DNA of 63,888 nt, filler included, from Octopus bimaculoides (Eukaryota), in assembly GCF_001194135.2 (NCBI RefSeq). It is 7 parts of 6 records of this genome, joined end to end, with 100 filler letters (N's around TTAATTAATTAA, not from the genome) between each part and the next. Parts side by side here need not be neighbours in the genome. Positions count along the whole stretch, not along the records: positions 17,420 to 37,638 come from NC_068982.1; 6 more parts are not named here. One strand, written 5' to 3'. Below, one piece after another: positions 16,395 to 37,638 of this stretch; positions within the stretch are counted from its first letter, which is position 1, and every line of letters starts with the position of its first letter. The notes under the pieces are model-generated. The model did not search any database. It was given only the letters and a program-made list of their open reading frames with translations, and was not told the origin of the DNA. Position numbers and translations under genes: made by a program.

Positions 16395-18610
16395 ACAGAT
16401 AGATAGATAGATAGATAATGAACCTTGAACTTCATACATTGCTATGCATTTCTCTACATCAAATTCTCTCTACATCTCGACATAAAATTCTTCTGCTTAT
16501 TCTCTTACTTATATGCTTTATATTTCGTCTCCAATGACAGAATACCCAGTATATGGAATTGTAGATCAACACATCGATCCATTACCTGGGATATCCCAGA
16601 AACAGCTATAAGACACTATGGTTTTTATTTTTGCTTACTTCACTGCAGCATTAAACTAATTTAAATGAACTGATAATCTTGCCCTGCCTTGGTTTTGTTT
16701 TCCTTCTCTTTAAATTATACCTACTGGCTCAAAGGTAGGCTGCAGATCGCCAGTTCTTTTGCTACTGGACAATGGCTATCACAGCTCCAGCCACCTTTGT
16801 GAATTTGGATCCTAGTAGCTTATCAACTGGAGCACTCACACTGCTTACCTAATAGTTTAGGTTACCTGTGACCAAAACTCTTCTTCAACATCAATATTCC
16901 TCCCTATGAAATTTTGTATCCTTGCCGTAAGGCTTTATTTCCACACATGCCAGCTTAATTTCATTCATCCTTAGTTTAAAGACACCTGTTGTTATGTCCT
17001 GTTATTATTTTTATTGTATTTGTGTAACATTGTCCGTTTTTTTCCGCCCTTGTTTTTGGATACATTCGCTGCTTTCTTCCAAGGAATCTAATGCTCTTAG
17101 CTTAGTTTTTCCTTGGGGTTGGCCAGATTGGAGCAATCTCAAGTATGATCAGCCGAAATTGCAAAGATAACCTGGTACTTGACTGAGGAAAGAAAACTTC
17201 AAATGACCCATCCTTGTTTCCTTTGTATCGTCTATCTGGATGTTTTGTTGTCCCATTTTTGCATCACCTAACTGTCCAGATGTTTTGTGTTCTTGTCCCA
17301 TTTTGTATGGTATATATATNNNNNNNNNNNNNNNNNNNNNNNNNNNNNNNNNNNNNNNNNNNNTTAATTAATTAANNNNNNNNNNNNNNNNNNNNNNNNN
17401 NNNNNNNNNNNNNNNNNNNTATATATATATAAAGAAAATTCCCTTCAAATGGTTCCAGTACAGTTTCAACAAAAAGATTTGGAAGAATTAGATGAAATTT
17501 CTCCGGTAACTTTTCATGTAAATAAATATTTATGTTAATTTTAAAATTTGTCAGCAAAATCTTATAAAATGACAATATTCTGAAAGATGTACATGTTTAC
17601 ATATGAAACGTAATGGAATAAACATCCATTCTCTCTCATAACTTCTCTTATCTGTTCAATTTTTACATACATAACGACAGATAGATATAGATTAACTATT
17701 TTGTATACCATTATAATATTACTTCCACATAGATGTAGTGTGCTTTAAATACACATAAAAACGTCACTCGGAGTGCCACCCACCACCTTGCTGCCCTCCA
17801 CTCGAGTTACGCAACAGCTCAAGTACGTCATGGTTTTAAAGTTGGCAGTTTTAAGTTTATTCGTTTTCTCTCTTCTTCCATCTAAGGAAAGAGTTCATCA
17901 AAGACTGTGATATTTTTTATCTTCATCTTCGTGCTTTCATCTCTTCTAGAGTATCATTTCATTTCCTTTCTCTGATGTAATGTGCGTAGATCCCTATTAA
18001 GTTTACGTCATTCGTGTAAGAGATATTTTGAAGAGGTATCTATTAAATTATAGTTCAGCTATTACCGGAAAATGTAGATTTTCGAATTGCAGAAATATTT
18101 TAGTAGAACATGTACACTAGAAGCAAAAGGGTAACCTGGAATATCCACATTTCAAGAAATTAAATGAATATTAGAAATTCGCAGCTGAAACTTGATATCT
18201 CATCAAGTTAATATTTTCGATATTTGCTGTTCTTTTATCATCTTACTTGTTTCAGTCATTGGACTGTGGTCGTGCTGGGGCACTGAGGAGTTTAATCAAT
18301 CAAATGAATGCCATATATTAAAAAAAATTTAGTCTATCAAATAATTACCATACTTCAGCGTTTTTCAAACTTTTTTGTCGCAACCCATTGAAGGGTTTGA
18401 AAATGAGAATATCTGAAATAAAATTGACTGCTCTCACAAGCGAGAATACTAAAAATGAACCCGATCGCTCTAAAAAATAATCCAAATATATATATATATA
18501 TATATANNNNNNNNNNNNNNNNNNNNNNNNNNNNNNNNNNNNNNNNNNNNNNNNNNNNNNNNNNNNNNNNNNNNNNNNNNNNNNNNNNNNNNNNNNNNNN
18601 NNNNNNNNNN

Positions 18611-18646
<36 letters not shown>

Positions 18647-19207
18647 GCGGTGAAGGGAGAGGGGGTGAAATACTAATACAGTGAAGGAAAAGTAGTGAGA
18701 GTAATAGCCGTGACGGAGGAAGTGAGAGAGAGTAATGACAATGAGAAAGACGAAATGAAGTGGCAAGGAGAGCGTCGTATGAATGAGAAAGGAAGAGGTG
18801 ATAGATGAATAACGAAGGAAGGTGTGAAAAAGCCGATAAACAGCGTTTGAAGTGTGAGTAAATGTGTGTGTAAAAGAGAAGTATGTTTGCGCGCGCGTGT
18901 GTGCAGAATTGAAATGGGATTTTAATGTTCAATGCTGTTAATGTTCAACGTGAGTAAATGTATGTGTGCGCATGTATAAGAGAACTATGTGAAACTTTAC
19001 ATATACATGTAAAGTAAAAACAAAAAACGGAAAAATAATCCAGAATCCTTGTCAGGTACTATATAGATCCCAAAGTCTAGTCAGTTCATGCCAGTCACGA
19101 GGCCAAACATCCCTGAAAGTTTCATCCGAATCCATCCAGCGGTTCTTGAGATATCTTGTCCACAGACAAACAACTGAAAACAATATCTCCGCCTTCGCTA
19201 AGGCGGA

Positions 19208-19399
19208 GGTAATAATAACCCTTTCTACTATAGGCGCAAGGCTTGAAATTTGGTGGAGGGGGGTAATCGATTACGTCGACCCCCGAAAGGATGAAAGGCA
19301 AAGTTGACCTCGGTGGAATTTGAACTCTGTACGTAGCGACAGATGAAATAACGCTAAGCATTTCGTCAGCGTGCCGACGATTCAGCCATCTCACCGCCT

Positions 19400-19400
<1 letters not shown>
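19208..19400 (-). mobile_element. SINE family B-related copy
   Basis: Shares CGACCCCGAAAGGATGAAAGGCAAAG and GAATTTGAACTC with family B. Confidence 0.7.
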
Positions 19401-19434
<34 letters not shown>

Positions 19435-19629
19435 GTAGTAGTAGTAGTAGTAGTAAGCATCCGTCGGTCTCGAGAGGCCATAGATCTGCGCCCAAAGAAG
19501 TCGTGTCAGCTGCTGATAGTAGTGCAGCGCCTGCTGTGACCGAACAGGCCCACAGGGGAGTGGCAGTCGAGCATACAGCGACTGCATTTGAATGAGCTCT
19601 CTGCCGGTGCTGATGATTTTTACTTCCGT

Positions 19630-19890
19630 CGTGTGCGCTTTTCTTTGAAAGCGAATACCTGTTTTTTCTTCCACTCTCTTCATTCCCTTTCGCAGTAATT
19701 GTCTCCAGCATGGGTGATCATTTGCAATCTCCTTCCATCTCAAGAGACTTCATGTCCCTCTTGCAGACATCTTTGAAAAGAAGATGAGGCCAGCCAATTC
19801 CCCATACAAGAGGTCTTTTGGAATCCTTCTGTCTGACATGCGATGAGCATGATCGAACCGGCGCAAACGACGCTGCTGAGCAAGATGTGT
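19630..19890 (-). mobile_element. RTE-BovB-like LINE, C-terminal fragment
   Basis: QQRRLRRFDHAHRMSDRRIPKDLLYGELA matches the RTE motif LRW.GHV.RM.D.RIPK.LLYGEL. Confidence 0.8.
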
Positions 19891-23800: not shown

Positions 23801-24510
23801 CTTTCGTCAAAATGCATCATTATTTCCGTTGATTTTACGTTTTACTTATCTATTTATTTCTATATTAAAAAAGAAAAAAATGCCGGAAACATATTTTAGC
23901 ATGGATGGTAATGGGTGGGACTAGTTAAATGACGGAATGGGTTGCGTATTCTAAAAAGTTTAAGATAAACAAATGTTATAAAAAAAAACATACAAAAGTA
24001 GTTTATCGCATGTAATGACGATCATAAGAGGGATGGGGATAAAGCTGACGGCATCGACGATAAGAACGATGACATCAACAACAATGAGGATGATGCTGAT
24101 GACGGTGATTGTAATAATGTTAAGAAGGGAAATAACTCCGATGCAGAAAAATCTCAAAATCTGTTTAATGCAGATGTTACAATATCATTGAAATAGGTTA
24201 ATGGAAATGCTATCATATATCAACCTGTTGCACTCAGAAAGTTTTTTTTTTTTTGCTTTTTAAGGTTTAGTCAGAGAAAAAAATAAAAGAAACATTGAAA
24301 GATGTTTGGTGATAATAAGGAAATGATAATGTCACGAAGGACAGAGTTTATAAGTTCATTGTTCATTATCAAAAGCTTGCTGAATCGTAATTTCAAAACA
24401 TGGGTGAAAAGAAAAAAGAAAGATGACAGAAAAAGAGTTTAAGAGATCAAAGGGTTAGCGATCTGGAGTTGTTTTGACATACAATTGTCCTCTGGTGAGG
24501 TAGTGAATTT

Positions 24511-24850
24511 CATCATCATCATCGTTTAACGTCCGCTTTCCATGCTAGCATGGGTTGGACGATTTGACTGAGGACTGGCGAACCAGATGGCTGCACCAGG
24601 CTCCAATCTGATTTGGCAGAGTTTCTACAGCTGGATGCCCTTCCTAACGCCAACCACTCAGAGAGTGTAGTGGGTGCTTTTATGTGCCACCGGCACGAAG
24701 GCCAGTCAGGCGGTACTGGCAACGGCCACGCTCAAAATGGTGTATATTACGTGCCACCTACACCGGAGCCAATCCAGCGGCACTGGCAACGATCTCGCTC
24801 GAATGTCTTTTCACGTGCCACCAGTACAAGTGCCAGGAAGGTGACACTGG
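24511..24850 (-). mobile_element. RTE LINE 3'-UTR copy with (GAT)n tail
   Basis: CATCATCGTTTAACGTCCGCTTTCCATGCTAGCATGGG..., the same terminus as the LINEs at 2313 and 33299. Other copies at 28342-28640 (-), 28985-29287 (+), 30213-30900 (-), 32040-32360 (+) and 36020-36290 (-). Confidence 0.85.
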
Positions 24851-25714
24851 TAAACTTTTTGGTGACCAAAATTAGCTCTCAGATTTTAGATTCTAAACCA
24901 GGTATCAGCAATTTCTTTTCTTTTTGTAAAGACTCACTTTTAATTTGTTTTCTTTTATATTTGCCCATGACCGGCATATCTTCTAATATATAAAATAGAG
25001 ATGTCTGTGTATTCGCTTTTCACGTGAAATCGACTTCACCAAATGCTTCCATACTTGTGATGCATGAATAATTTGACCTCGGATAAATGTTAGGCTCTTC
25101 ATTTGATTTTTTTTTTATTAAAAATAAATAATATTGCTTTATATTTATGATTCACTTCTTTAAAAAGGTTCCTCAATGTCAACTTCCGGTATCGACGTAA
25201 CAACGGCAAAAAGCTTCACTCTCTAATTTGACGTTTTTGTACCAAATGCTTACATACTTGTGATGCAATGTCAACTTCTGGTATTGACGTAGCANNNNNN
25301 NNNNNNNNNNNNNNNNNNNNNNNNNNNNNNNNNNNNNNNNNNNNNNNNNNNNNNNNNNNNNNNNNNNNNNNNNNNNNNNNNNNNNNNNNNNNNNNNNNNN
25401 NNNNNNNNNNNNNNNNNNNNNNNNNNNNNNNNNNNNNNNNNNNNNNNNNNNNNNNNNNNNNNNNNNNNNNNNNNNNNNNNNNNNNNNNNNNNNNNNNNNN
25501 NNNNNNNNNNNNNNNNNNNNNNNNNNNNNNNNNNNNNNNNNNNNNNNNNNNNNNNNNNNNNNNNNNNNNNNNNNNNNNNNNNNNNNNNNNNNNNNNNNNN
25601 NNNNNNGTGTGTCTTTGTAAATATGTTTGTATACATTTATGTATGTGTGTGTTTGTAAGAGACAGAATGTGAGTGAGTCAAGGGGTGTGTTGTCATATGC
25701 ATCCATCATTTTTG

Positions 25715-26280: not shown

Positions 26281-29200
26281 CCATATATCTTACATGTAAA
26301 AAATATCCCCGTGTATTCTCCACCATTTCTTTCACTAGCAAAAATTAAACAATTCATGATTTAAAGACTATTTAAAAGTTATCAATGGTTCAATGACCCA
26401 CAAATACACTAAATTTTAAACTTTTCAGAACCGTTCTGATGCCTACAGAGAACAACATCTCAGTGAACCATTTGTTGGCTGCAGCCCACCTCCTGCTGGC
26501 ACCTATTCTCAACTTTGCACTATAAGTTGATACAAATGGTGATTGGTCAAAAAACAGCCAATGAAGTACTAAAAGCAAAAATTAATCAGTAATTCATTGA
26601 AAGCAAAGCTGTTTGATGAACCACTTTTAGGAACAAAACGATAATTTAAGCATGATTGAATGAGCTGCAAGACAAAATATTTATGCAAGAAATACATCTT
26701 ATATGAAATGAACATTTTGTTACTGTTTATATCCTTTTATCACCTCGAAATAAAAAAGAAAAAAACAAAGAACTTTATTTCTCAACACAGTTGACCAAAA
26801 GTGTTACTCCTTCTTCATCCCCCACCGCCTATCTAAAAGAAAACAACAAAAAATTCTCCCAATTGCTTTATCTTCTTCCAGCTATGCTACTGTGTGTGTC
26901 GTCATCATTCAACATCAACTTTTCCATGCTTGCATGGCTGAGATGGAATTTATTGAAGCGGAATTTCTATGACTGGAGGCCCTTCCAGTCAACACTCTTC
27001 ACCTGCTTTCAAGCAAGATAATATTTCTCCATGGTCAGACATGTTTTTCATGAAACACTGGAAACGAACACCAATTGTATGATGGTGATGCTTATTTATA
27101 ACCATCACATGATGTCATGATAAGGGTATATACAAATGCACACAACACACACACGTGTGTGCGTGTGTGTGTGTGTGTGTGTACTTACACACCCATAATG
27201 AACTTCTTTTAGATTCCATCTACCAAATCCACTCACAAGGCTTCTTGGTCAGCCCTTGGCTATAGTAGAAGACACTTGCCCAAGGTGCTGCATGCTGAGA
27301 CTGAACACTGAAACTACATGTTTCAGAAGAAGCTTCTCGGTCATACACCAACACTAGAAAAAGTGGGATACATTTAAAACTATTCCTCTCTACCACAAGG
27401 AAACCACTGTCTCTTCTAAATCCTGGCATCAATGAAAAAAACTAGAAGAAAGAGAAGAATGGCATTCACTGGAACTTGTTAGACTAATGGCGATTGTTTG
27501 TATTTGCAAGAATCAACTTTATAATAAACACTTAAAGGGTGTATGTTTTTCATTCATATCAATTCACCTAGTTTCTTCTTTGATAAAGAGAGCTGCTCAA
27601 AATGTTATTTACTACTTCCTCCTACACCACAACATATAACTATGCAAATTTCAATCACAATCTACAGAAAGGATGGTTGAGAACAGAGTCGTAGGTAGCT
27701 ATTCATCAATGTACACTAAGTTCACTGTGGCTACTTTTAACAGCCTCATACAAAGCCAGGATTGTTCTTGCTACTAATACTCCTGCATATAGCATTGAAT
27801 AAAATTACATCAATGTAATACTAAAGATGGCCTTTTTCTTTCTTATCATTGCTTGAGGATATCAAATAATTACATAGAATTGATTTATTATGTTGACACA
27901 AAGACTTAAATTAGTAATGGTAGAGAATGGTTGACTGAATAGACACCGGTACATGACTAGTACTTATTTTATTGAAATAAGGGGATACAAACATAGCTGA
28001 ATGGTTAAAAAGTTTGCCTTGCAATAGAGAGGTTCTGAGTTCAATCTTGCTACATGGTATCTTGAATATATATCTATAATCATAGCCTCAGGTTGACTCA
28101 TCCTTTCTAAGTGAAATTCAATAGATAGGAGCCTTTTTGAAAGGCTGTTGGGTGGATTGTTCCTAGGGTCTTTACACATTGTGTCATGCTGATTTATTAC
28201 GCTAAGGCAGTGTTTCTCAACCCTTTTACCCTTGTGTAATCCTTAAAATAAATCACATGTCTCAAGGAACTCCTGCACAAAAAAAAAATTATGTGTCATA
28301 TCTTTCTCATATTTTTTCATCATAGTTCATATGGTAAATATCATATATATATATCATCATCATCATATCATCGCTTAACGTCCATTTTCCATGCTGGCAT
28401 GGGTTGGATGGTTTCACTGGGGTCTGGGAAGCCAAGAGGCTGCACCAGGCTCCAATTTGATCTGGCAGTGTTTCTACAGCTGGATGCCCTTCCTAACACC
28501 AACCACTCTGAGAGTGTAGTGGGTGCTTTTTACATGCCATCAACACAGGGGCCAGAGTAGGCTGGCATCGGCCACATTTGGATGGTGCTTTTACATGCCA
28601 TCAGCACAGGAGCCAGTCACACAAAAGGTATGCCTTGGCACTTGCCACCATCTATATCTCTCTCTTCCTTTACTCAACCATCCCATTTATATTCTGATCC
28701 TTGTTCCTTGTGAGTATGCCCAGCATTTTGCCACCATCTCTATCCTGCTGTCTCTCAGTCTCTCTCCTTCTCTTGCACTTCCCTCAAGTTGCTTAATCAT
28801 GTATCTCTTCTCAGTAGCATACCTGTTTCTGTCTTCTTTCTTGATCTCTCTCTCCCTCCAGCCAGGTAACCTTGTACCTCTACAGCAAGACACCTGTTTC
28901 TGTCTCTCTATCTTGCCATAACCTTTCATCATCTGACACAAGGATCACCTTCTCCAATGCCTCCTCTCCTCACAAATGATTTTCTGTCTTGCAAGTTACT
29001 TGGTGACCCTGTCAATGTAGGTGCCACTTAAAAAGCATTGAATCCACACATTATAGTGGTTGGTGTTTGGAAGGGTGTCCAGCTGTAAAAAAACTTGCCT
29101 GTTCTTGTGCAACATAAAAAGCACTTAGTCCATTCTGCTGAGTGGTTGGTGTTAGGAAGAGCGACCAACTGTAAAAATCCTGCCAAAACAGTTACAGAAG

Positions 29201-29874
29201 CCTGGTGCAGGCTCCTGCCTGGCCAGTTCCTGGCAAACCATCCCACCCATGTCAGCATGTAAGGTGGACATTAAACAATGATGATGTTAACTAGCTCAAA
29301 TATGCTGGAGGCATTTTCGAACCTGTAAGAAAGCCATTTTCTGTACTTTGCCATGGAGAAGGTTTCTTGCTGTAGATAAATAGGTGTAAATACACCAAAT
29401 CCTGCTTATGCAGCTCCCTAATCAGACTGTTGAATGTGTGTATTACTGTATTTATTGCATATGTATGCAGGGATGCATGTTTGAATGTGTGTAAATGTGT
29501 GATACAACAGTGCATATGGCTTGGCAAGATGTACTATGCCTTCACAAATTGTTTTAGTTGCCTGTGATGTCACAGGCAGGCACTGACACCTTCACAGCTC
29601 CTTCACCTTTGACTCAGAGGAACATCCAGAATGTGACAGCAAGAGGGAGAAAGGGTTCCATCAGCACTTGACTAGTACTCATTAAACAACATTTGGCCCA
29701 GGATTTGAACACATGACGAGTGTCAAAATACTTGGCTCCTGATAGCTGAGTTTATCAAGTTCTAAGTTGTTATTATTAGAGCTTGGCTCATCTTTGCATA
29801 CATGCTCTTTTGACTATTACGCACACAAAGCAGGCATGCTAAGCTAATATTTTTCCCTCTTGTTCTGTTAACGA

Positions 29875-29881: not shown

Positions 29882-30078
29882 AAAGGGTTATTTTACTTGA
29901 AATACCAGAACTAATTAAATATTTGTAAACTAGCATTTCAATATCTTTGTTATTTTTATTATTGATGTTTAATATTTGATCTGCATTGCTATAGGCTTTC
30001 TGTAACACAATGATTTTCTAGATTTAATTAATTGGAAAAAGACATTAAATATGATTTTATTAATTTTCCAGAATAAAT

Positions 30079-30130
30079 ATGAAACAATACATTTCCTTGA
30101 TTCTTTTGCTGTGTGGGGCAGTTCTCATTG
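30079..30130 (+). CDS. Signal-peptide exon of a small secreted Cys-rich peptide gene (MKQYISLILLLCGAVLI + G, phase 1)
   Basis: Acceptor TTAATTTTCCAG at 30071, ATG at 30079, 17 codons of N-basic/hydrophobic signal type, and donor G|GTAACG at 30131. The leftover G joins CT of the 36712 exon to give Ala in frame. Confidence 0.8.
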
Positions 30131-30396
30131 GTAACGTATCAAACCTTTATTTATTAACATAACACTAACTCCTAAAAGAAGGTTGAAACTAAATAAAGAA
30201 AAAATACTATTCACCATCATCAACATTTAACGTCTGTTTTCCATGCTGGCATGGGTTGGACAGCTTGGCAGGAACTGGCAATGCTAGGGACCTCACCAGG
30301 TTTCTTAGTTTGATTTCGTAGGGTTTCCGTAGCCAACCATTTTACAGAGTGTATTGAGTGCTTTTTACATGACATCATCACTCACACCAATGCTTT

Positions 30397-30787
30397 TGTA
30401 GTGGCGCGTGTGGCCGCCATCTTGGGAAGTGCCATTGCGCATGTGCAAGGGATTTGCCGTCAGCGGAAGTACCCGGGCACGCGTGCGCAATGCAACAGGT
30501 GGAGAGAGAGCAATAGCGTTTGTCTTCTTCTCTATCTAACAGCGGTCGTGACAACACATATCTTCCAGTGCTCTCTCAACTCGATACTGATTTGTGGTCA
30601 AAGCTTCCTTGGTATTCTAGCGGCATGCCTGTTCACCCAGGAACGAAACGGCTCTACACCTACCTAGAATAAATTATTGATCTGTTGTTACCGTTATCCC
30701 TCGTGTTGTTGTATTTCTGGATTTTAATGATTAATATAAGAACTGGGGAGAGATGGCTGAGCCGTCATATCTCATCCAATTCTTATA
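30397..30787 (+). mobile_element. Probable solo LTR (391 bp, 4-bp TSD CTTT)
   Basis: Starts TGTAG and ends TTATA (TA rather than the canonical CA), flanked by CTTT on both sides (30393-30396, 30788-30791). It interrupts an RTE 3'-UTR copy that resumes afterwards. GC-rich 5' part and AATAAA at 30668. Confidence 0.6.
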
Positions 30788-31042
30788 CTTTGTTTGTGGC
30801 ACCTTGGTTTTAGGATCTCAGTTCTGTTATAGTGGGTGAATATTCTTGATTACAGCAATGCATCACATATCTTGGTCCTCTCTCATCTCTTTTGTAAGGT
30901 TCAGAATTTTGACATCAACCTTCAATACTTTGTCCCCTGTTTTCCTGGGTCTATTACATTTATTTAATGATCTGATATGGAAGAAGGTGCTATGCTTATA
31001 GTTTTCACGGGTTCTCAAGATGGAATGCTTTCTCCTGTTAGT

Positions 31043-31320
31043 CATCATCATCATCATCGTTTAACGTCCGCTTTCCATGCTAGCATGGGTTGGACGATTT
31101 GACTGAGGACTGGTGAAACCGGATGGCAACACCAGGCTCCAGTCTGATTTGGCAGAGTTTCTACAGCGGGATGCCCTTCCTAACGCCAACCACTCAGAGA
31201 GTGTAGTGGGTGCTTTTACGTGTCACCCGCACGAAAACGGCCACGCTCGAAATGGTGTCTTTTATGTGCCACCCGCACAAGCCAGTCCAGGGGCACTGGC
31301 AACTCCAGGGGCACTCAAAG
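31043..31320 (-). mobile_element. Young RTE 3'-UTR copy
   Basis: Differs at about 2 positions over about 220 bp from 37739-37972 (inverted), and at only a few positions from 35021-35226. Confidence 0.9.
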
Positions 31321-33298
31321 GCAGAAATCATTAATATATTTGGTATTTATTTTACCAACCTCCAAAAGGACAACTAGCAAACTTGACTCTTGTCAGATAT
31401 TAATTTCAAAAAATGACAGATGGAATTTATTATAAGTAATTTAGTCTGTCAAACTAGCACAGTTGTTAGCATGTGGAACAAATTGTTTTGTCTCATATGA
31501 CAAATTATTCAGACTTGGCTGTGTGGTTGAGAAGCTTCTTTTCCAACTATGTGGTATCAAGTACAGTCTTACTGCATGGTACCTTGGGCAACCAAAGCCT
31601 TGAGTAAATTTGGTTGATGGAAACTGAAAGAAGCCTATTATTTAAATATTTATATATTAGCCCTGTTTATATATTTACTCTATAGGTTACATATATCATA
31701 CCTTAGTACTGTGTGGACTAGATCCCCATTAATAGGCTCCTGATATTAAAGTGTTAACATGCACGGTATGCAAATTAGTAGCCTCAATTCTCTGTAGCTG
31801 CTGGAATTGTTGAATATATAAACTGATTGGCTGCTTATTTCTCAGGGATTGGTCAAATTGATGTAAATGCTTCTGACGAGAATCCTATAAGATTTGAAAA
31901 TCGATTGGTGTTGTTTGTCATTTTTTAGATCTATGGAGAAATAGCTAAATTAACGCTGTTTCTATACCTACTACATAGGTTTTATATATATATATATATA
32001 TAAATAAATATATATGGGTCTGGGTCTCATGTAGGCAAAGTGGCTGAGCTCCTTTCAAGTGTTGGGTCTCATGGAGGCAATGACCAAAACACTTTGGCGT
32101 TATGTCATGCTTGATAAGAAGACCCATCAAACTGAGCGAAATCACAGTTGTGGCAGATACTGGTGTCACGCAAATAGCACCCATGCTGGTGGCACATAAA
32201 AGCACCCATTACACTCTTGGAGTGGTTGGTATTAGGAAGGGCATCCAGCTGTAGAAAACCATGCCAAATCAGCCTGGAGCAGCCTTCCAGCATGCCAGCC
32301 CAATCAAACCGTCCAACCCATGCTAGCATGGACAATGGACGTTAAATGATGATGATGATGTGCGTGTGTTTACCCTTGTCTTAACATTATGTGATGGTTG
32401 TAAAGAAATATCCTTATCATACAAGCAATCTTGTTTCTTTCCCTGAAAAACATGCCTGGCTAAAGGGACATATTACCTTGCTTGGAAATAGATGAGGGTT
32501 GACAACAGGAAGGGCATTCAGCTGTAAAAAATCCACTTCAGCAAATGTCATCTGGCATGTGTGAGTTTAAAAGCGGAAGTTAAATAATATTTGTTCTAGT
32601 TCACTGCATTCTGAGTTCAAATCACACCAAAGTCGACTTTACTTTCCTTCCTCTTGAGAATTGATAACTAACTCAAGCTTTGTGAGGCAGAAACCGTGTG
32701 AAAGCCCATCTGATGGGTCATACCTGTTATTTAAAGCTGCAACCTTGTCACACACTCTGAACAAGAACTCTACATTAGAACAATGAATGACGACTATGGC
32801 TATAGTGTCCTTGCTATCCAACGTGATTGCTTTCCCAGTGGACTAATGTCAGATGTAGTTAACATTTGTGAAGGATATGGTGAACTCATTTGTCAGAGTT
32901 GGCTCAACCCACCCTGGGTAAATGCCTCTGCAAATGCAAGTAGTACAATACACACCTATGCTATGCTTAATCCATCTGAAAATGTTAAGGGGACATATGT
33001 TTGTGGGGTAGTAAGTCACGGAGGTGCTAATTCAATCACATAAGTATTTCAGTCAATCAAACAATTGAAACACTCCACATTGAAACTACCACAGATCTGT
33101 TTTCTCTACTTTCATTAAAAATAATAAATTTCAAATTTAAAGATACATGAATTCTGTTAAGTTTTCTTGGATTTGATGATAAAGTAAGTGAAAAGAAGTC
33201 GTCGGGTTCAGATGTCAAAAATAGATGTAAATTTTTCTTATTTATTTTAATTTGACTTGATGTTCTTAATTGGTATAATTTTATGTTAGGTTTTTATA

Positions 33299-34935
33299 TT
33301 CATCATCATCATCGTCGTTTAACGTCCGCTTTCCATGCTATCACAGGTTGGACAGTTTGACTGAGGACTGGTGAGCACCAGGCTCAATCTGATCTGGCAG
33401 AGTTTCTACAGCTGGATGCCCTTCCTAACGCTAACCACTCTGAGAGTGTAGTGGGTGCTTTTATGTGCCACCAGCACGAGGGTCAGTCAGGCGGTTCTGG
33501 TAACGACTACACTCAAAAGGTGTTTTTTACATGCTACCTGCATGGGAGCCAGTCCAGCAGCACTGGCAACGACCATGCTCGAATGTTGTTTTCATGTGCC
33601 ACCAACACGGGAGCCAATCCATGGCCCTGGCAATGATCATGCTCAGATGTGCCTTTAACGTTCCACTGGCACGAGTGCCAATCAGGTGGTACTGTTATCG
33701 ACCACGTCAGCGATTTTGATTTGATTTCACTTGCCTCAATAGGTCTTCGCAAACAAAGTTTATTGTCCAATGAATGAGATGGTACTCATAAGTGGGGTGA
33801 TTACTGTGGTACTGGCCAGTTACGATATTGGTTTTATTTGACTCAGCAGCTCATCTCAAGCATATCATATCGCCCAAAGCATGAGGGGTATTCTTAACTG
33901 GACCAGACATGCATGGCTGCAATCTCACTTTAGTTGCTGGGTCTTCTCAATCCCAACATATTACCAAAGGTTTCAGTCTCCTGTCATTGCCTCTGTGAGG
34001 CCCATTGTTCGAAGGTCATGCTTCATCACCTCCTGTCATGTTTTTCTGGGTCTACCTCTTCCACACACAGCTGTTCTCATCCATACGTGACACAAGAAGA
34101 TACCACTGCAATTGTCTCTCTTACACACCACATTTGATGCTTCTTGTGTCCAACTTTTCTCTCAGGGTGCTTACACTCTGTCGTGAATGCACACTGATAT
34201 TACACATCCAGCAGATCATACTAGCTTCATTTCTTTCAAGCCTATGCATGTCCTCAGCATCCATGGCCCATATTTCACTGCTGTGTAGCATGGCAGTTCG
34301 CACACATGCATCATACAGTCTGCCTTTCATCCTGAGCGAGAGGCCCTTACCTGAACTTTGCCCAGGCTATTCTTATTCTAGCCGCTACACTCTCAGAGCA
34401 GCCACCCCCACTTCAGACTTGGTTGCCTAGGTAGTGGAAGCTATTAACGACTTTTAGTTCCCCTCCTTGGCATGTGATGGAATCTGTTTTCTGTACATCT
34501 TCAGTGTTTGTTGCCCCTGTGCATCCGTCACTTACAAAAACTATCTTCCTGGTTAGCCTTCCTTTGATATTACTGCACCTTTTATGTGTCCATAGCTTAC
34601 ATCGGATACATCGTATGGAGTTTCTATCCATGCCTCTTCTACAGATTGAGCAGGGCCATCAACCTGAAGGAATTTGGGATTTGACAGCCTTCCTATTTAC
34701 TAAGGCTTTGGTTTTTGCTAGGTTAACCCTAAGGCCCTTTAATTCTAGACCTTGCTTCCACACCGCAAACTTCGTCTCTAGTTCTGGCAGTGACTTGGTT
34801 ATTAGAGAAGGGCATCAGCATAGAGGAGCTCCCAGGGGCAACCTGTCTTGAATTCCTCTATTGCCTGGAGGACTATAATGAATAAGAGGGGTCTGAGGAC
34901 TGATCCTTTGTGAACCCCTACTTCTACTCAGAATT
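33299..34935 (-). mobile_element. 5'-truncated RTE-clade LINE (RT C-term, PHD-like cluster, 3' UTR, tail)
   Basis: MDRNSIRCIRCKLWTHKRCSNIKGRL and KGRLYDACVRTAMLHSSEIWA, contiguous with the (GAT)n-tailed 3' UTR. Confidence 0.85.
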
Positions 34936-35020
34936 CTATCATTTAATGTCTGTTTTCCATGGTGGAAAGCCAGAAAATTGCACCAGGCTTCACTGTCATT
35001 ATATATATATATATATATAT

Positions 35021-35226
35021 CATCATCATCATCATCATCGTTTAACGTCCGCTTTCCATGCTAGCATGGGTTGGACGATTTGACTGAGGACTGGTGAAAC
35101 CGGATGGCAACACCAGGCTCCAGTCTGATTTGGCAGAGTTTCTACAGCTGGATGCCCTTCCTAACGCCAACCACTCAGAGAGTGTAGTGGGTGCTTTTAT
35201 GTGTCACCCGCAAGAAAACGGCCACA
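35021..35226 (-). mobile_element. Young RTE 3'-UTR copy
   Basis: Near-identical to 31043 and 37739. Confidence 0.9.
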
Positions 35227-35695
35227 CTCTATACGAATACTTTTTAATTATTATATACTTTCCACTGTTGAGATTCCCAGATTTTTAGAAAGCACAGTGA
35301 AATTAATTTATACCCTAAACTCAACTATTGTCTTTTTGATAGTCGAACACCCTGCATAGAGCTTACCTTGAGTACTGTTCCCCATTTCCAAGTTATGGCT
35401 ATAGTCAGTTGTTGAACCTAGTTTGTGAAGTGGGCTAACAGAGAACTTGCTCGAAGTTCTTGACACTGGATGACACAGCAAAAGGAAATCCTGGTGTTTT
35501 CTTCCTCTCACACCATCCTACCAACAATGCAAGTTGTCTAACAATATGGAATGGTGGTGGTTTGCTAAGTAACTTATATATATATATATAATTCCAGTAT
35601 AGGATAAAATCTTTATAAGAATTTATCAAGTAGTTAACGTGAAAAAACCTCATATGGGAAAAATCCATCATTTATTCCCTATAAATATATTTATT

Positions 35696-35897
35696 TATAT
35701 AAGGGCATTACTATACATAAATGCCTCACGCTAAGAGGGACTCTAAAGTCAAACTACCATAATAAACACATTTTTACAGAAAGCAAGGGAATGCAACTCT
35801 CAAAGCTAGCCTCCTAAAAACAGACTAAATGTGTTTATTATGGTAGTTTGACTTTAGAGTCCCTCTTAGCATTTATGTATAGTAATGCCCTTATATA
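35696..35897. mobile_element. Fold-back element / MITE with about 70-bp inverted arms, TA-flanked
   Basis: 35696-35773 is the reverse complement of 35827-35897 apart from a short indel, with a spacer of about 55 bp. Confidence 0.75.
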
Positions 35898-36711
35898 TAT
35901 ATATATGACAGACACACACACATACATACATATATATATATATATATACACAGACATACATATATAATGTGTGTGGGGAGGTGTATTTGAGAGTGTATGT
36001 TTGTGCCCCCTTGTTTTCACATCATCATCGTTTAACATCTGCTTTCCATGCTGGCATGGGTTGGATGGTTTGACTGAGGAATGGCAAGCCAGGAAGCTGC
36101 ACCAATCTAATCTGTCAAGGTTTCTACAGCTGGATGTCCTTCCAAACACCTACCACTCCGAGAGTGTAGTGGGTACTTTCTATGTGCCACCAGCACGGGG
36201 GCCAGTCAGGCGGCACTGGCATCGACTACGCTCAAATGGTGTGTTTTATGTGTCACTGGCATGGGAGCCAGCCAGGCGGCACTAATGAGTTTCACCTTCA
36301 TACAAGTGGTGTCATTCATTTTACAGTCTTCCATGTAAATGAGTTCAGTCACAAGGAAATATTAGTTTCCTTGGAAACAAGTTAAGGTTGACAACAAGAA
36401 TGGGAACCAATCATAGAAAATCTGCTTCAACAAATTCCATCTGATGCATGAAAGCATGGAAAAGTAGATGTTAAAATGATAAATATTTCTTACAAGTGAT
36501 ATATCTTGCAAGGAACTTGGTGATGCTTTCAGTGATGGCATCATGTAAAAGGCATCAAACTGTAGAAAGCATGCCAAAACAGACAATGGAGCCAGATGTG
36601 GCTCCCAGCTTTGACAGTTCCTGTCAAACCATGCAACCCATATCAGCATGGAAAATGGATGTTAAATGATGATTGATAATATTATTCCAAGTATCCATTT
36701 CTTTTTTCCAG

Positions 36712-36872
36712 CTACAGTAACTAATGTGGAGGCAACACTCTGCTATGATAGCATGACTAACTGTAATGCTGCCTGTGGAGGAAGTGATGAGCATTGTAGC
36801 CAGTACTCGTGTACTACCTGGACTGCCAGCTGTATTGTATGCAACTGTGACCTACCAAATTTTCAAACATAA
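36712..36872 (+). CDS. Terminal coding exon of the small secreted peptide: (A)TVTNVEA|TLCYDSMTNCNAACGGSDEHCSQYSCTTWTASCIVCNCDLPNFQT*
   Basis: Strong acceptor CATTTCTTTTTTCCAG at 36711 and a phase-1 start matching the 30079 exon. 8 Cys in 36 residues, TAA stop, and AATAAA 40 nt downstream. No similarity to the repeat families seen in the window. Confidence 0.85.
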
Positions 36873-36911
36873 TACACCAGCACCAATGGAATCTCCTTAT
36901 TGCTCATTCCC

Positions 36912-36917
36912 AATAAA
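36912..36917 (+). terminator. Polyadenylation signal AATAAA of the peptide gene
   Basis: Canonical hexamer 40 nt after the stop, followed by T-rich sequence. Confidence 0.55.
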
Positions 36918-37344: not shown

Positions 37345-37638
37345 GTGTGGAAGCAAGGTCTAGAATTGAAGGGCCTTAGAGTCAACCTAGCTAAAACCAA
37401 AATCCTAATAAGTAGGAAGGTAGATAAAACACAAACCCCTTCAGGTAGATGGCCCTGCTCAGTATGTAGAAAAGGAGTAGGTAGTAACTCTATAAGATGT
37501 ACCCGGTGCAAGCTATGGACACATAAGAGGTGCAGCAACATCAAAGGCAGGTTAACTAGCAAGTTAGTTTTTGTTTGTGGCAGATGTTCAGGTGCAATAA
37601 AGACTGCAAACAAACAGGAAACAACTTCTATCTCATTC
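37345..37638 (+). mobile_element. RTE-clade LINE fragment with PHD-like Cys cluster
   Basis: GLRVNLAKTKIL...GRWPCSVCRKGVGSNSIRCTRCKLWTHKRCSNIKGRL...FVCGRC. Runs into a gap. Confidence 0.85.

Follow-up and report, generated by a model that had tools for sequence, protein, structure and literature searches.

A publicly predicted two-exon Octopus bimaculoides gene model for a probably secreted, anionic, four-disulfide peptide, possibly with a CS-alpha-beta-like scaffold

Among described molluscan peptides, the defensins MGD-1 and Cg-Def and the myticins offer the closest comparison for the octopus peptide considered here: all have mature chains of about 40-45 amino acids, signal-peptide precursors and eight cysteines, with a CxxxC motif followed by CxC. 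The four-disulfide scorpion alpha-KTx6 toxins (e.g., maurotoxin) likewise carry eight cysteines on a cysteine-stabilised alpha-beta (CS-alpha-beta) core, with loop lengths comparable to those of the octopus peptide; they are basic peptides with a CxCxxC ending that block K+ channels by means of a critical Lys. Big defensins combine an N-terminal hydrophobic domain with a C-terminal, six-cysteine, beta-defensin-like domain that ends in CC. ShKT domains (PS51670 / PF01549) are also small, secreted and disulfide-rich, and their six cysteines end in C-x3-C-x2-C, usually with TCG. CS-alpha-beta (cis-) defensins are unreported from cephalopods (PMC5116183), homology searches as of 2020 found no cephalopod antimicrobial peptides (PMC7551771), big defensins (trans-type) have been noted in Octopus genomes as genes that lack annotation (PMC7203481), and secreted single-domain ShK-like peptides of molluscs have been described from a gastropod only (PMC6409789). 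Here, we analyse a two-exon locus on the plus strand of an Octopus bimaculoides DNA stretch of 63,888 nt (the window). All coordinates refer to the whole window, and the term piece denotes its O. bimaculoides part of about 20 kb that contains the locus (17,420-37,638, from NC_068982.1).

We read the locus as a genuine O. bimaculoides gene with two coding exons for a secreted, four-disulfide, anionic peptide that had already been predicted publicly, and we give this reading a probability of roughly 0.58; that the gene is real is its firmer part, which we regard as likely. Splicing 30079-30130 to 36712-36869 in silico yielded a 70-amino-acid precursor, MKQYISLILLLCGAVLIATVTNVEATLCYDSMTNCNAACGGSDEHCSQYSCTTWTASCIVCNCDLPNFQT, followed by a stop. 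The phase-1, two-exon construct proposed in an earlier sequence-only reading of this DNA was thus reproduced, residue for residue, by direct reading and in-silico splicing. The precursor and UniRef100_A0A0L8H122 (UPI000695861A) from O. bimaculoides agree at every residue (100% identity, full length); this entry bears the automatic name "ShKT domain-containing protein" in UniProt (A0A0L8H122). It follows from this identity that public annotation chose exactly this splice and that the gene is already described as a model; the earlier description of a hidden gene therefore has to be given up, given that the protein is in UniProt. The same match agrees with the cephalopod origin suggested for the peptide, and it leads to a model of the same 70 amino acids, not to a larger known protein or a repeat family.

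Coding exon 1 (30079-30130, 52 nt, phase 1) encodes Met1 to Ile17, that is, the n- and h-regions of the predicted signal peptide, together with the first base of codon 18, and its translation equals residues 1-17 of A0A0L8H122. Its ATG, at 30079, has an A at position -3, and the exon ends in ATT G, followed directly by the donor GTAACG. Upstream, an AG at 30070-30071 follows a pyrimidine run (ttaattttccAG, then aataaatATG) and could be the acceptor of a non-coding 5' exon, although the call, made by direct reading, is uncertain; an in-frame TAA lies at 30061-30063, 18 nt 5' of the ATG and upstream of this AG. The position of the AG directly 5' of the start codon suggests that such an unannotated exon may exist. 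The phase-1 intron (30131-36711, 6,581 nt) contains copies of a repeat resembling a short interspersed nuclear element (SINE) as well as an antisense retroelement fragment, and closes with a polypyrimidine tract and an AG at 36710-36711 (ccatttcttttttccAG, then CT).

Exon 2 contributes 158 coding nt. Its start (36712-36734) encodes the putative c-region of the signal peptide, A18-TVTNVEA25, with cleavage predicted after V-E-A from hydropathy and the -3/-1 rule, and 36735-36869 encodes the predicted mature peptide of 45 amino acids, TLCYDSMTNCNAACGGSDEHCSQYSCTTWTASCIVCNCDLPNFQT, with eight cysteines, a net charge of about -4 and neither Lys nor Arg. The stop codon, TAA, occupies 36870-36872 by direct reading, and a poly(A) signal, AATAAA, follows at 36912-36917, 39 nt past the stop; both had been expected. 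The earlier exon 2 was right in its start and frame, while its end at 36872 includes the stop, coding sequence ending at 36869. The statement that the list of open reading frames (ORFs) misses both short parts does not hold, since exon 2 is contained in a listed 68-amino-acid ORF (36666-36872). A rule-based scan additionally marked a putative in-frame alternative acceptor AG 6 nt into exon 2 (36716-36717), which, if spliced, would give a 68-amino-acid precursor (…VLI-V-TNVEA…). Both exons are DNA that occurs once in the piece, interspersed between SINE-like copies (30207-30381 and 36548-36680), and self-comparison of the piece placed no repeat over exon 1.

The predicted signal peptide, with K2, a hydrophobic core of 15 residues and V-E-A at positions -3 to -1, fits both hydropathy and the -3/-1 rule, in accordance with the sequence-only reading. 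Cysteines of the mature peptide stand at positions 3, 10, 14, 21, 26, 33, 36 and 38, giving a loop vector of (6,3,6,4,6,2,1), and Y24 and W29 are present, all exactly as had been proposed. Likewise confirmed was the absence of Lys and Arg alongside four acidic residues: the charged residues are three Asp, one Glu and one His, and the isoelectric point is about 4.0. A scan of the mature peptide for N-glycosylation, dibasic and amidation sites found none.

The proposal that this is a defensin- or toxin-like CS-alpha-beta peptide was examined against reference structures checked in the PDB, including MGD-1 (1fjn), Cg-Def (2b68) and variants; the MGD-1 sequence and cysteine positions cited in the sequence-only reading match 1fjn exactly. 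The loop vector of the peptide lies at an L1 distance of 5 from that of MGD-1 (5,3,6,3,7,1,2), a closeness reached by 3.9e-4 of random cysteine placements (uncorrected for the number of comparable frameworks), and at a distance of 6 from Cg-Def (8e-4 of random placements, likewise uncorrected). The spacing is unusually close, and it is the sole quantitative point in favour of a defensin reading, one that needs to be discounted for the many frameworks that could be compared. The helix-motif order CxxxC...CxC is present as C10xxxC14 and C36xC38; since 12% of random placements of eight cysteines in 45 amino acids also show this order, it is weak evidence for the fold. Within the reference array of ten cysteines given in PMC5116183, which also defines helix-motif cysteines 3, 4, 8 and 9, C3 and C26 stand where the third bridge, C2-C6, from an N-terminal cysteine to one on the middle strand, needs cysteines and are a candidate pair by position. 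The peptide shares with MGD-1 and Cg-Def an aromatic residue before the fifth cysteine (Y24) and a Trp in the hairpin loop. On the other hand, mollusc defensins end in CxCxxC and the peptide in CxxCxC, placing its extra cysteine at C7 of the array and not at C10; mollusc defensins are also strongly positive, whereas the peptide has a net charge of -4, no GXC motif and no profile similarity. The caveats attached to the original proposal (CxxCxC in place of CxCxxC, no gamma-core Gly, no Lys or Arg) were thus accurate. The octopus peptide also differs from the alpha-KTx6 toxins in its lack of Lys and Arg.

A substantial body of results weighs against the reading of a genuine gene with a CS-alpha-beta-like product. 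The locus is known here from genomic sequence and a public gene model, and short orphan models are the class most prone to misprediction. A word-indexed search of 5.8 billion proteins returned A0A0L8H122 itself as its single candidate, a full phmmer search of 1.84 billion representatives (E<=0.001) gave the self-match only, and tblastn of the piece with three queries (whole precursor, signal peptide, mature part) revealed no paralogue. With regard to the fold, the GXC (gamma-core) motif at reference C6 is missing, the peptide reading Q23-Y24-S25-C26 where G23 and C25 are invariant in six reference defensins, and the terminal CxCxxC of the mollusc eight-cysteine array (reference C2-C6, C8, C9, C10) is replaced by C33xxC36xC38. 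Pfam assigned neither the precursor nor the mature peptide to any family at E<=10 (defensin PF01097, myticin PF10690 and toxin models included). Family hidden Markov models (HMMs) were built from six structure-verified members each, and the peptide was compared with 5,000 shuffles of itself; with the defensin HMM it scored -6.4 bits, and 2,725 of the 5,000 shuffles scored equally well or better. Profile alignment to CS-alpha-beta with hhalign had a probability of 0.2%. Single-sequence AlphaFold (AF2) modelling gave low confidence, with a predicted local distance difference test (pLDDT) of 66.8 when the precursor was modelled and of 62.6 for the mature peptide alone, and a Foldseek search of the model against the PDB gave 0 matches. 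Finally, the automatic rule in UniProt says ShKT, not defensin.

Further searches were similarly unproductive. A PDB sequence search found no meaningful relative, a scan of metagenome contigs for the peptide found nothing, and a literature search for the accession and the peptide strings, extending to the supplements of a mollusc prohormone survey, found no paper. Exact look-up of the 70-amino-acid product and the 68-amino-acid exon-2 ORF in a contig collection gave no record, a result that is uninformative, since a control protein of the same species gave none either. When the neighbouring retroelement ORF was searched as a control, named matches came from O. bimaculoides only, in addition to anonymous ENA and Logan contigs; as the control thus found no other cephalopod, the missing orthologues are weak evidence, and other cephalopod proteomes appear to be poorly represented among the proteins searched. 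A single copy lacking annotated paralogues is unlike the typical expanded families of venom or antimicrobial peptides. Other cysteine frameworks were considered and rejected: a big defensin, given that the peptide has no CC pair, no extra N-terminal domain and no Pfam match, and EGF, WAP/crustin, Kazal and pacifastin, which need a CC pair or other spacing and which Pfam likewise did not match.

How far the locus could be a product of chance was addressed by a construct scan that required a first exon opening with ATG, encoding a basic n-region and a hydrophobic core and closing at a GT, a polypyrimidine-tract AG within 10 kb (<=10 kb), and a second exon with an in-phase ORF of 30-90 amino acids holding at least 8 cysteines. 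On both strands of the piece, this locus alone qualified. Among 300 strands of 20 kb simulated with a second-order Markov model, 3.7% contained an equivalent construct, a share that rose to 27% when the threshold was lowered to at least 6 cysteines; the background probability of an AATAAA 5-100 nt 3' of a random position is 0.12, so that the joint chance with the poly(A) signal is about 0.4% per strand (3.7% x 0.12). Open windows of 45 codons with at least 8 cysteines occurred in 32 of 200 simulated pieces, and the piece itself has a second one, with 9 cysteines, at 29379-29513 (+), in TG-rich low-complexity DNA and outside any start or splice context. We take this second open stretch as a chance example; it shows that cysteine-rich open frames are no rarity in the O. 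bimaculoides genome. The sequence features at the locus are therefore moderately beyond chance for one window and, alone, no proof of a gene in a genome of 2.7 Gb, where extrapolation of the simulation allows thousands of chance constructs, a further point against the gene.

These figures give some weight to the main alternative, namely a false gene model in which a hydrophobic ATG mini-ORF was paired by chance with a cysteine-rich frame, picked ab initio in the 2015 annotation, met again in the sequence-only reading and not expressed. Besides the simulated constructs and the 9-cysteine window, it would account for a protein that finds no relative in either of two very large protein libraries, has no paralogue in the piece and shows no family signal above that of its own shuffles. 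It fits less well with the coincidence of a good signal peptide that includes a -3/-1 site, a strong polypyrimidine-tract acceptor, an even number of cysteines, an AATAAA 39 nt past the stop and exons in unique DNA, nor would it predict a cysteine spacing near that of real defensins (p ~4e-4, uncorrected). The public annotation pipeline reportedly joined transcriptome evidence with prediction, and a 70-amino-acid model spanning a 6.6-kb intron with no evidence behind it would be unusual. We consequently regard a false model as rather improbable, yet as the alternative to be taken most seriously, and the gene as probably expressed. A second possibility is that the cysteine-rich exon is part of some other or longer transcript whose further coding exons lie in the intron or beyond the piece, so that the 70 amino acids would be incomplete. 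The acceptor-like AG at 30070-30071, which has no stop between it and the ATG, leaves room for an upstream exon. This possibility appears very remote, considering that the chain starts canonically, with M-K-Q before a hydrophobic core, that the public model has the same 70 amino acids, that the ORF is closed off by its stop and the AATAAA, and that we found no other protein sharing words with the product and no other coding-like, non-repeat ORF in the piece.

If the gene is accepted, its public name raises the alternative of a divergent single-domain ShKT peptide, i.e., the all-helical ShK fold (C1-C6, C2-C4, C3-C5) with one extra disulfide, which would function as other secreted ShK-like peptides of molluscs do. 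The UniRef name implies a match to a PROSITE-type profile (presumably PS51670), the mature start C-Y-D resembles the C-x-D start of ShKT sequences in the PDB, and the gastropod peptides set a molluscan precedent (PMC6409789). We compared the peptide with ShKT references checked against the PDB (ShK, 1roo; aurelin; 7l2g; OspTx2a/b; ShKT-Ts1). Neither Pfam ShK (PF01549; no match at E<=10) nor the HMM from six PDB-verified domains reproduced the label, the latter scoring -2.5 bits, with 1,075 of 5,000 shuffles equal or better (p ~0.21), and hhalign gave a probability of 0.4%, aligning C10xxxC14G alone, to the CxxTCG end. All six references share the C-x3-C-x2-C ending with an invariant T-C-G, for which no choice of cysteines in the peptide fits both spacings: its only x3 pair is C10/C14, no cysteine follows at x2, and at least two indels would be needed. 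The peptide instead has eight cysteines ending in C-x6-C-x2-C-x-C, no basic residues (the Lys of the Lys-Tyr dyad included) and, in the weak AF2 model, a beta-hairpin where an all-alpha fold would be expected. We thus think an ShKT peptide unlikely, and the label on A0A0L8H122 should be treated with caution.

The AF2 model of the mature peptide alone (pLDDT 62.6), for its part, has a strand at 3-4, a helix at 7-13 that covers C10, and a hairpin at 26-30/33-36 that covers C26, C33 and C36, that is, a beta-alpha-beta-beta order. At this low confidence, such an order would be compatible with CS-alpha-beta and would not fit the all-helical ShK fold. What is left of the defensin- or toxin-like proposal is accordingly its loop vector near MGD-1 and the element order of a weak model, whereas Pfam, HMM, hhalign and Foldseek were all negative. 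Membership of either CS-alpha-beta or ShKT is unsupported by profiles; CS-alpha-beta-like is the better guess, and we hold this fold to be tentative and less likely than not. Should it be correct, the peptide would fill positions C2-C9 of the PMC5116183 array with a previously undescribed C5-C7 fourth bridge. That the locus encodes the first cephalopod cis-defensin scaffold, with a new array C2-C9, a C5-C7 bridge and a fully anionic surface devoid of Lys and Arg, is a bolder claim that we consider doubtful.

On this CS-alpha-beta-like reading, a mode of action can be sketched. The signal peptide of 25 residues, split by the phase-1 intron near the end of its hydrophobic core, would target the precursor co-translationally to the endoplasmic reticulum and would be removed after V-E-A, whereupon the remaining 45 residues would form, by oxidative folding, a compact miniprotein with four disulfides. 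As dibasic, amidation and glycosylation sites are missing, the 45-mer would probably be secreted unprocessed. The likeliest scaffold would be a cysteine-stabilised helix packed against a beta-hairpin at the C-terminus, linked by C10xxxC14 to C36xC38 and by C3-C26, in which an unusual fourth bridge, C21-C33, would replace the C-terminal bridge of mollusc defensins. Since Lys and Arg are absent and the net charge is about -4, the peptide cannot bind membranes or lipids cationically as classical defensins do; lacking Lys, it cannot plug K+ channels in the manner of ShK and the alpha-KTx toxins; and resistance to trypsin-like proteases would follow from the absence of both residues. We infer from these properties that the peptide serves outside the cell as a binding ligand or an inhibitor; it might act in signalling, be pheromone-like, or form a salivary or mucosal component.

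If validated, an octopus CS-alpha-beta peptide would fill a phylogenetic gap, and, if real and of this fold, it would bring both a new variant of the cysteine array and a new class. An anionic example free of Lys and Arg would, if true, show the scaffold in use beyond cationic killing or Lys-plug channel block, and could mean that an ancestral mollusc defensin scaffold was re-purposed for a non-antimicrobial role, for instance as a water-borne signal or as a salivary or mucosal ligand that withstands proteases. Otherwise, the product would be one of the many secreted peptides rich in cysteine, uncharacterised and without relatives, that mollusc genomes encode, its gene model already public.

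The surrounding DNA is rich in repeats, with about 22% of the piece repeated within itself. Self-comparison revealed a SINE-like interspersed repeat in 8-10 copies and both orientations, with repeat copies at 24508-24852, 28335-28619, 29104-29294, 30207-30381, 31039-31303, 32177-32360, 33295-33697, 35002-35229, 36015-36480 and 36548-36680, so that SINE-like copies closely flank both exons. The repeat has no tRNA-like head according to ARAGORN and no Rfam match, and the piece as a whole holds no tRNA and no Rfam family. A retroelement tail is present in two copies, downstream of the gene (37345-37638, +) and antisense in the intron (34121-34786, -), where an ORF scan located a PHD-finger ORF (34413-34631, -). 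The tail codes for a zinc finger of PHD type (Pfam PF00628, E=1.3e-6) and shares 74% identity with proteins of O. bimaculoides that carry the name "Zinc finger PHD-type" or "Reverse transcriptase domain-containing". The ENA contig ERZ17499220 has no nucleotide similarity to the piece; it and the Logan contig ERR599226 carry an ORF 55% identical to the PHD-finger ORF of the retroelement. Two N runs flanked by microsatellites (18507-18610 and 25295-25606; GA/TC, TA-rich) look like gaps of a draft assembly. Overlapping ORFs on both strands at 19122-19711, with long runs of poly-Thr, Ser, Val and Leu, represent a trinucleotide microsatellite rather than a gene.

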